Positions 1,780 to 4,700 of a stretch of 64,000 nt of DNA are shown piece after piece. A program made the position numbers and the translations under genes. The stretch is taken from positions 558,001 through 622,000 of the forward strand of contig MCFH01000023.1 in NCBI GenBank assembly GCA_002104945.1. Direction: 5' to 3'. The first letter of the stretch is position 1. Each line of letters starts with the position of its first letter. The notes beneath the pieces were generated by a model. That model was given only the letters and a program-made list of their open reading frames with translations, was not told the DNA's origin and ran no database searches. Source of the DNA: Piromyces finnis finn (taxonomy: Eukaryota; Fungi; Neocallimastigomycota).

Positions 1780-4700
1780 ATGTCATTTAATAATCTAACG
1801 TTTAATGAAGTATTGGACGATTTATCAAGGTAATGAAGTTAATGTATGATACATTTTGTAAAGTATAATAAAATTCATTAATTTCTTTTTGCTTTTTTTG
1901 CTTTTTTTTTTTTCTTATTCATTATAAATAGTCGTTTCATCATTAATGTTCCAGTAGAAGAATTATCGTCAATTGAAAGAATATGTTTTCAAATTGAACA
2001 GGCTTATTGGTATTATGAAGATTTTGTTAGAGAGCAAAATCCTAATTTACCATACTACAATTTGAAAAACTTTTCAGCAAAATATATCTTTTTTATACAT
2101 TAATTAAATAATTATAAATAGACTTTTATATAAATCTTTAATTATTCTTAACTCCTTTGAACTTTTTAGACATTGCCCTTTACTTCAAAAATACTCAGAT
2201 AAACATGAAAAAGCTTTTAATGATTTTATTAGATATAAAATTAGAGTTCCAGTTTGTGGAGCCATTATATTAAATGAAAGAATGGATAAAGTAAGAATTA
2301 CAATATTATAATAACAATAGTAATACATAATAAATATATTAAGTAATTATTATATATGAAAAAACAGTGTTTATTAGTTAAAGGTTGGTCAGCTAGATCA
2401 GGATGGGGTTTTCCAAAAGGAAAAATTAATAAAGAAGAACCTGATATTGATTGTGCTGTTAGAGAAGTAGGTTTCTTTTAAATATTTGATATAAAATATC
2501 ATAAAAATTAAGATACCAATTATTAATATGAAATAGGTAATGGAGGAAACAGGTTATGATATATCAGAATTCGTTAAAGAGGGTGATTATATTGAATTAC
2601 TTATTAAAGAACAAAGAATTCGTTTGTATATAGTAACTGGTATACCTGAAGATACACATTTTGAGCCTCAAACTAGAAAAGAAATTAGTGTAAAGAAAAT
2701 AATATTAAATAAAAAATAAAGCTTTGTTAAATATTTTTATCTAATCCATACCCAATATATACTTCAATAAATAATGAATACAACAGAAAATTAAATGGCA
2801 CTATGTTAAAGATTTACCAAATGATAAAAGAGATAAATATTGTTCAAAACCAAACAACTTTTATTTAGTCTATCCATTTGTAGGAAAGCTTCATCAATGG
2901 ATAAAAAGAGAAAAGAAAGCTAGATATTTAAGAAAGAAAAAGGAAAATATATTAGCTAGGAGCAGTCAAAGAGGAAGCCATATAGGTGAATCATCTGATA
3001 TTGAAGTAAGTGAATTTGATGGTGCAGTTTCAGATAGTGGTGTAAGACATGCTGACTATGAACGTGTAACAGGAATCATCCCAAAACAAACTGGCCATAT
3101 AAAATTTGATTCTGGAACTAATTATTCATCTGATGTTGAAGCTACATCTGTTTTACGTTCAGTTTTAGGTATAATGCCAGAAAAACCACCTCTTCTTCCA
3201 TCTCAACCACCAATGCCTAATGAATCAATGAATATTTTAAATTCACCATATATGAATTCGCCTAAACAAATGAATTACAAAACTCCTCCAACAATTTTCC
3301 AATCATTACCGTTTAGTCAGCCTACATCTGGACCAGGTATTCTACAATCACCTGTTCAAGTCCCATTACAATTTCCACAACAATATCCATCATTACAAGG
3401 TCAAATTCCACTTCCAATGCAAATGACATCTCAATGTGCTCCTTTAGCTATGAATTCACCTACCCTTGGATTAGCAACTCCACTTGCTATTCAACCAATT
3501 TCACTTCCGCCATCCACTTTACCAAATCCACCATTATATATGTTTAATAATGAAGGTATTATGAATCCTGAACTTCTTGTATCACCATATATTGTAGCTA
3601 ATAATAATCCAAATTCTGTAGCAAATGCGCCAATGGATGGTTATGCACTACAGCCACAATCCTATCCAAATCCAAACTTATCTCTCACGGTAAATGAAGC
3701 TCCACAATCATCTACAAAATTAAAACCTATTAATGATGATTCATTAGAAAAAAAGCTATTAGACTTTTTGAATAATAAGACAAATAGTTCTGAAGAAACA
3801 CCTGGTAAATAAATGAATAAAACTATTTAATAATAATAATAATAATAATAATAATAATAATAATAATAATAATAATAATAATATAATAATAATAATAATA
3901 ATAATAATAATAATAATAATAATAATAATAATAATAATAATAATAATAATAATAATAATAATAATAATAATAATAATAATAATAATAATAATTAATATTA
4001 ATATTATAAAGCTATTATACTATAATAATAACAATAAGATATTATGATAATTACATATATTAACAATTAATAATTACGATCTTTTTAAAATAATTTTTTA
4101 TAGAACCAGATCAACCAATGCAAGGAAAAGTATTGGATGGAAAGGATATACTTAGAATGTTAAACTCTGGACAAGTATCGAATGAATACAATTCTAATGA
4201 AAATAATATTCAGGGACAAATAAATAAAGAAAATGAACTAAAATCAAATGTTAATGAGAATGGAATGGAGGTAAATAATGTTAATCAAAATTCGGCAAAT
4301 CAAGAAGATATTCCATCAAGTAATCAAATGTTATTGAAATTATTAAATGAAAATACTGATGATAAAGGTGAATATGCTAAAAAGTATTCTGACAATAATT
4401 ATAATGAAAAGCAACAATATATCTTGGGATTATTTAATACTGATAACCAAGATAAAGCACCAATAACTTCATCTCCATCAATGAATACTAATCAACAAAT
4501 ACAAAAATTATTTGAAATGCAATCATCTGGAATGTTGAATAAGACAAATGATTTAGTGAATCAACCAAGTTCAAAGAATCTTGACCAATCAAAGGAGGCA
4601 CTTCTTAATATGTTTACTATTAATGAAAAAGCAAGACTTATTCAGCAACAATCACAACCAAATACTCTTAGTGAAAGTTCAGTATCTTTATTAGAAATGT

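Follow-up and report, generated by a model that had tools for sequence, protein, structure and literature searches.

We analysed a window of 64,000 nt from the anaerobic gut fungus Piromyces finnis (assembly GCA_002104945.1, contig MCFH01000023.1, positions 558,001 to 622,000 of the forward strand; 19.7% GC). Over its first 9.8 kb, the window was found to be identical to this contig. A single DCP2 gene of P. finnis, encoding the mRNA-decapping enzyme, lies in this window and hosts an intron with AT..AC ends—79 nt (2084–2162) that are removed from the mRNA exactly at these ends. Judged by its motifs, its conservation in orthologous genes and the published record, this is very probably a genuine U12-type intron, that is, a substrate of the minor spliceosome. 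The gene and its parts are as follows.

1780–6334, + strand: DCP2 gene, seven exons with one open frame of 1276 codons, delimited from sequence, homology and RNA
1780–1829, + strand: exon 1, with the start codon at 1780, a 16-residue translation that fits Dcp2 N-termini, and RNA contig coverage from 1767
1830–1931, + strand: intron 1, GT-AG, 102 nt; the contig pieces 1767–1827 and 1930–2083 are adjacent
1932–2083, + strand: exon 2, Dcp2 box A, ending in ...NFSAK plus T (last bases ...TCA GCA AAA T)
2084–2162, + strand: intron 2, AT-AC, 79 nt, phase 1; putatively U12-type, by motifs and orthology
2163–2290, + strand: exon 3, starting with TT and then FRHCPLL...
2291–2367, + strand: intron 3, GT-AG, 77 nt; RNA joint 2290/2368 in four runs
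2368–2466, + strand: exon 4, Nudix domain
2467–2536, + strand: intron 4, GT-AG, 70 nt; RNA joint 2466/2537
2537–2689, + strand: exon 5, Nudix domain
2690–2786, + strand: intron 5, GT-AG, 97 nt; RNA joint 2689/2787, ambiguity 0
2787–3804, + strand: exon 6, a single contig piece whose loose end at 3804 resumes with the sequence at 4104
3805–4103, + strand: intron 6, GT-AG, 299 nt, containing an (AAT)n microsatellite
4104–6334, + strand: exon 7, low-complexity C-terminal region, with the stop codon at 6332–6334

At intron 1, the border in the contigs slides by 2 nt because an AG is repeated there. The (AAT)n microsatellite inside intron 6 is about 165 nt long (3826–3990) and was spliced out in four of four runs.

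The full DCP2 product comprises 1276 amino acids (1265–1290 in Neocallimastix orthologues) and consists of box A followed by the Nudix domain, colinear with characterised Dcp2 proteins among the PDB matches. It shares 59% identity with S. pombe Dcp2 across the first 236 residues, and 62% identity with Neocallimastix proteins of 1285–1289 amino acids over ~1100 residues. The families PF05026 and PF00293 are recorded both on a public 195-amino-acid P. finnis model and on the Neocallimastix orthologues.

The AT-AC intron is spliced out in RNA

Read without splicing, exon 2 runs on into ...SAKYIFFIH and then meets a TAA stop at 2101–2103. The AT-AC splice yields a protein reading ...NFSAKFFRHCPLL..., with the conserved box A sequence of Dcp2 restored. 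Exon 2 aligned to residues 18–67 of S. pombe Dcp2 (E 4e-18) and exon 3 to residues 69–108 (E 4e-12; both PDB matches); since the split codon T/TT corresponds to residue 68, the splice leaves this alignment gapless.

Splicing at these ends was observed in RNA data, which consisted of assembled Logan contigs, one per run, with the run type guessed as RNA. In X1 and X2 (study P1) and in X3 (study P2), the contigs joined 2083 to 2163 (“skips 79, AT..AC”), with a positional ambiguity of 0 and 0 mismatches over the exons, and the same contigs also showed the GT..AG joints 2290/2368, 2466/2537, and 2689/2787. The contig of a fourth run begins downstream of the AT-AC intron and is uninformative for 2083/2163. 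An earlier note, made from the sequence alone, had proposed an AT..AC intron at 2084–2162 that restores Dcp2 colinearity and had named the 2083/2163 junction as the place to look in RNA; the gapless S. pombe alignment and the contigs of all three informative runs, which join exactly there, bear this out.

A single contig per run, of guessed run type, might also prompt the suspicion that there is no intron, and that the contigs show a gap through misassembly or template switching, or that the 79 nt entered the reference genome as an insertion or by a mistake in its assembly. However, the joint is identical in three runs from two studies, has no flanking repeat, and sits in contigs that lack every other intron too; an intron in this position is also seen in separate genomes and metagenomes from related fungi, and public protein models of both P. 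finnis and Neocallimastix hold the spliced sequence. An artefact is therefore effectively refuted, and we accord it practically no probability.

Alternative splice sites fared no better. The dinucleotide GT occurs within 2000–2100 at 2010 and 2026 only, and when every possible excision here was tried exhaustively, none of the GT-AG type was both stop-free and frame-keeping, in agreement with the claim of the earlier note that no GT donor exists and that read-through ends at a TAA. GC-AG (two options) and AT-AG excisions were rejected, as conserved residues would be lost or changed and the RNA contradicts such splicing.

Splice-site motifs of the U12 type

The intron starts with ATATCTTTT (2084–2092) and ends in ...GAAC. 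Its 5′ site matches the U12-type consensus ATATCCTTT at eight of nine positions, the sole departure being C to T at +6—the one C>T change that had been pointed out beforehand. The branch-site motif TTCTTAAC (2145–2152) matches TCCTTAAC at seven of eight positions, likewise with a C-to-T departure, and lies at the canonical distance, with A2150 and A2151 as candidate branch adenosines 11–12 nt from the 3′ junction. While the earlier note had recognised this motif correctly, it had placed it 10 nt before the AC; the 10 nt are in fact the distance to the exon, and the AC dinucleotide is 8 nt away. The accepted human and mouse minor intron of RALGAPA2 (GTATCTTTT) has a T at +6 as well, and TTCTTAAC is the very branch site given for the human and mouse minor introns of SACM1L and ATG9A (MIDB, PMC6717393). 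The intron thus combines an extended 5′ box, a branch box with its spacing and no long polypyrimidine tract, AT-AC termini used in RNA, and positional conservation in orthologues, as expected of the U12 type.

Another candidate for the removal of these true AT..AC ends is the major spliceosome: in a U2-type AT-AC intron, the U12-like motifs would be mere by-products of an AT-rich genome. Introns of this kind look GT-AG-like after their first two bases (ATAAGT-like), whereas positions +3 to +8 of the P. finnis intron read ATCTTT rather than AAGT-like, with TC at +4/+5, and the intron has a U12-like branch box. In the remaining five introns of DCP2, the first bases are GTAATG, GTAAGA, GTAGGT, GTAAAG, and GTAAAT; these GTA(A/G)-type donors clearly belong to a different class from ATATCTTTT.

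The U2-type explanation does gain from the base composition, and from the fact that ATATCTTTT is not a perfect consensus. The U12 motifs alone are weak evidence because both are frequent in this AT-rich window, where ATATC[CT]TT occurs 22 times and T[CT]CTTAAC 11 times in 128,000 positions; yet the joint chance of finding both at positions fixed by the protein alignment is ~1e-7. We also scanned the window for other U12-type introns, taking (A/G)TATC(C/T)T(T/A) plus a downstream branch box as the pattern. Among 44 5′-site-like matches, this motif-pair scan found no second minor intron within the 64 kb. The only other plausible pair, 11750/11839, was rejected as an intron: its “branch site” falls in the coding sequence of a glycoside hydrolase family 31 (GH31) gene, the real intron of which reads GTTTGC...AAAAAG. 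Chance hence accounts for at least one pair of motifs in the window, again a point for the U2-type explanation. The GH31 gene itself is multi-exonic (8668–12600, + strand) and its public model carries PF13802 and PF01055.

If the intron is handled by the minor spliceosome, the established pathway suggests that ATATCTTTT would be recognised by U11 and later by U6atac, and that U12 would pair with the branch site TTCTTAAC, bulging A2150 or A2151 as the branch nucleotide. Assuming canonical small nuclear RNAs (snRNAs) and the pairing schemes known from human, the C-to-T change in each motif would convert a G-C pair into a G-U wobble and would not create a mismatch.

Conservation of the intron in fungi

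Orthologous AT-AC introns were found at six other fungal loci: in two anaerobic fungi, Rhizophagus, Phycomyces, and two Basidiobolus copies.

L001 1780–1886: Neocallimastix lanati Dcp2 intron, 107 nt, AT-AC, same site and phase
L019 1121–1208: Dcp2 intron of a third anaerobic fungus, from rumen metagenomes, 88 nt, AT-AC, same site and phase
L004 876–948: Rhizophagus diaphanus (Glomeromycotina) Dcp2 intron, AT-AC, consensus ATATCCTTT
L007 882–963: Phycomyces blakesleeanus (Mucoromycotina) Dcp2 intron, AT-AC, consensus ATATCCTTT
L010 879–972: Basidiobolus meristosporus Dcp2 intron, copy 2, AT-AC, consensus ATATCCTTT
L005 860–928: Basidiobolus meristosporus Dcp2 intron, copy 1, starting ACATCCTTT, with a branch box that is perfect (TTCCTTAAC) and AC at its end

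Across the three anaerobic fungi, the intron bodies have diverged in length and sequence, whereas ATATCTTT and the terminal AC are kept and each of the three xxCTTAAC boxes stops exactly 10 nt short of the end of its intron; the T at +6 is likewise common to P. finnis, Neocallimastix, and the rumen fungus. Codon position and phase are identical to P. finnis in Rhizophagus, Phycomyces, and both Basidiobolus copies, and the introns of Rhizophagus, Phycomyces, and Basidiobolus copy 2 carry a branch box, TCC(T/A)T(G/A)A(C/T), 9–14 nt from the 3′ end. Both the retention of motifs and spacing in otherwise diverged introns and the full consensus in orthologues from three other fungal lineages speak against a U2-type AT-AC intron with fortuitous motifs. 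The reading favoured by the earlier note—an ancient DCP2 intron of the minor-spliceosome type—is accordingly sustained by RNA-confirmed ends, by the motifs in three anaerobic fungi, and by positional orthologues with ATATCCTTT and TCCTTRAC. The start of Basidiobolus copy 1, ACATCCTTT instead of ATATCCTTT, may reflect a minor intron with a non-canonical 5′ end, an error in sequencing, or the decay of a paralogue.

The Dcp2 genes of Powellomyces hirtus and Mortierella alpina are intron-less at the equivalent site. In the amoebozoan Planoprotostelium fungivorum, a 43-nt GT-AG intron (GTACGC...CTAAT...CAG; L009 855–897) occupies the identical site in the identical phase, making it a candidate for a U12-to-U2 conversion or for an ancient shared position. 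As this intron is of the major type, type switching at the site has probably happened, which lends the U2-type explanation some further credit.

The sharing of the site by fungal lineages and an amoebozoan argues that the intron position predates Fungi. From its distribution, the intron has been lost at least twice (Powellomyces and Mortierella), and one conversion to the major type is probable. A more far-reaching scenario, which we advance only as a speculation that is unlikely to hold in full, would place the origin of the phase-1 intron behind the Dcp2 “SAK” motif before fungi, animals, and Amoebozoa separated. The intron would then have kept its U12 type in vertebrates and in no fewer than four lineages of fungi and have become major-type in Planoprotostelium, and the C-to-T change fixed at +6 throughout Neocallimastigomycota might track the 5′-site-pairing box of U6atac and not mere AT drift. 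Were this so, the +6 change of Neocallimastigomycota would offer a natural compensatory-change system for the recognition of minor 5′ splice sites.

Minor snRNAs and the class of the intron

Several observations weigh against a U12-type assignment. The T instead of C at +6 lowers the position-matrix score (a comparable human site scores 75–81 of 100), and the classification draws on motifs, orthology, and literature. The RNA evidence, being made of assembled contigs, cannot reveal intron retention or minor isoforms. An Rfam scan of the window returned three U2 genes and no minor snRNA. With a pattern for the U12 5′ region, used as a probe only, a metagenome scan gave 120 loci, none of them at the ~20% GC of anaerobic fungi, and the most AT-rich true U12 that the probe recovered (L138) comes from an unrelated eukaryote, not from P. 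finnis. Minor snRNAs are nevertheless reported for the lineage in PMC10639083, a further point against U2-type splicing. Taking these points together with the sequence and conservation data, we place high confidence in 2084–2162 being a genuine U12-type AT-AC intron, and hold a U2-type AT-AC intron to be very improbable.

The three U2 snRNA genes of the window are identical and full-length (153 bits each) and stand in tandem with a 923-bp period (41794–41987, 42717–42910, and 43640–43833, − strand). The U12 on L138 (4511–4695), scoring 63 bits, is a true U12 snRNA into which a long AU-rich stretch is inserted; its contig has 26% GC and belongs to a eukaryote from wastewater or a bioreactor. 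None of ten other large open reading frames of the window had a splicing-related Pfam match. Also present in the window are a 662-amino-acid ankyrin-repeat reading frame (33162–35153, − strand; Ank_2, E 1e-94) and one of 419 amino acids (62180–63442, − strand) with a weak Condensation-domain match (E 9e-9), which is possibly part of a gene resembling those of nonribosomal peptide synthetases.

Public models of the DCP2 gene

The earlier note had predicted that standard GT-AG annotation would mis-model this gene. This fails in P. finnis because the public protein ORX49712.1 (195 amino acids) already reads ...NFSAKFFRHCPLL... and is reproduced exactly using the 2084–2162 intron; public Neocallimastix models likewise contain the AT-AC junction. 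The prediction does hold elsewhere: the public Dcp2 model of Rhizophagus diaphanus drops 22 conserved residues through a forced GT-AG splice (L004 800–960), and that of Basidiobolus copy 1 translates the first 18 intron bases as NILYDD (L005 784–940).

A separate annotation error affects the P. finnis gene further downstream. ORX49712.1 ends in ...RKEIKN, which is reproduced only with an exon ending at 2687, i.e. with a GT at 2688 as the donor of intron 5. Calling this donor 2 nt early (2688 instead of 2690) causes a frameshift and a stop at 2792–2794, and DCP2 is consequently split into ORX49712.1, a 195-amino-acid Nudix protein, and BCR36DRAFT_65571, a 953-amino-acid “hypothetical protein”. 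The latter starts at an internal Met (window position 3174) that is residue 324 of the true product, and a 738-amino-acid open reading frame at 4118–6331 is 100% identical to it. That there is one gene of 1276 amino acids, and not two, is supported by the RNA contigs and by the Neocallimastix orthologues of 1265–1290 amino acids.

Comparison with known minor introns

Taken alone, the intron has little significance: it is one clean minor intron of an anaerobic gut fungus, verified in RNA. The wider value lies in a single minor-intron position common to four fungal lineages and probably vertebrates, and major-type in an amoebozoan, which makes it a tidy example for work on how minor introns are lost or change type. 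In addition, forced GT-AG splicing is shown to distort the public Dcp2 models of Rhizophagus diaphanus and Basidiobolus, and the division of P. finnis DCP2 into 195- and 953-amino-acid models is exposed as a distinct error.

U2-type AT-AC introns resemble the P. finnis intron in their AT..AC ends, but they are devoid of a TATCCTT-like 5′ box and of a TCCTTAAC-like branch box near the 3′ end.

Among the closest known systems are the minor introns of the anaerobic gut fungi themselves (Neocallimastigomycota), the group to which P. finnis belongs and whose published complement is of the same intron class. Larue & Roy 2023 (PMC10639083) explicitly name P. finnis as a species with minor introns and minor snRNAs, which agrees with the inference in the earlier note of a functional minor spliceosome. 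Both P. finnis and Neocallimastix californiae have published minor introns along with most of the canonical minor snRNAs (PMC10639083), and N. californiae is credited with 129 minor introns (Olthof et al. 2024, PMC11347168). The accessible portions of PMC10639083 and PMC11347168 give no gene-level lists of minor introns; the supplements of Baumgartner et al. 2019 do not mention DCP2.

The introns of Rhizophagus, Phycomyces, and Basidiobolus are like that of P. finnis in codon position, phase, and AT-AC ends, with lengths of 69–94 nt and a branch motif 9–14 nt from the 3′ end. They differ from it in that Rhizophagus, Phycomyces, and Basidiobolus copy 2 have the full consensus ATATCCTTT, while Basidiobolus copy 1 starts with ACATCCTTT.

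In mammals, DCP2 was among the human U12-intron genes already in 2007 (Chang et al. 2007, PMC1874599). MIDB catalogues the human and mouse DCP2 genes among those with a minor intron, with the 5′ site CTG/ATATCCTTT and the branch boxes TTCCTTGAC and TTTCCTTAAC (Olthof et al. 2019, PMC6717393); the human intron is placed there at chr5:112,985,987–112,992,120 (hg38). The mammalian intron is of the same AT-AC subtype in the same gene family, with ATATCCTTT against ATATCTTTT at the 5′ site and TTCCTT(A/G)AC against TTCTTAAC at the branch site; unlike the 79-nt P. finnis intron, it spans 3.6–6.1 kb, and it has a C at +6. The mammalian exonic CTG fits Ala plus the first base of Val and is thus consistent with the phase-1 site SAK/F—as a fit only. 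No animal Dcp2 was among the matches listed for homologues. The vertebrate DCP2 minor intron named in the earlier note is therefore confirmed as to its existence by MIDB and the 2007 list, whereas its equivalent phase-1 position is no more than compatible with the CTG fit.

Set beside these systems, the AT-AC intron of P. finnis DCP2 is an ordinary member of an already known class. It is not new, since class and lineage are published, the gene is known for its minor intron in mammals, and the junction is present in the public model.

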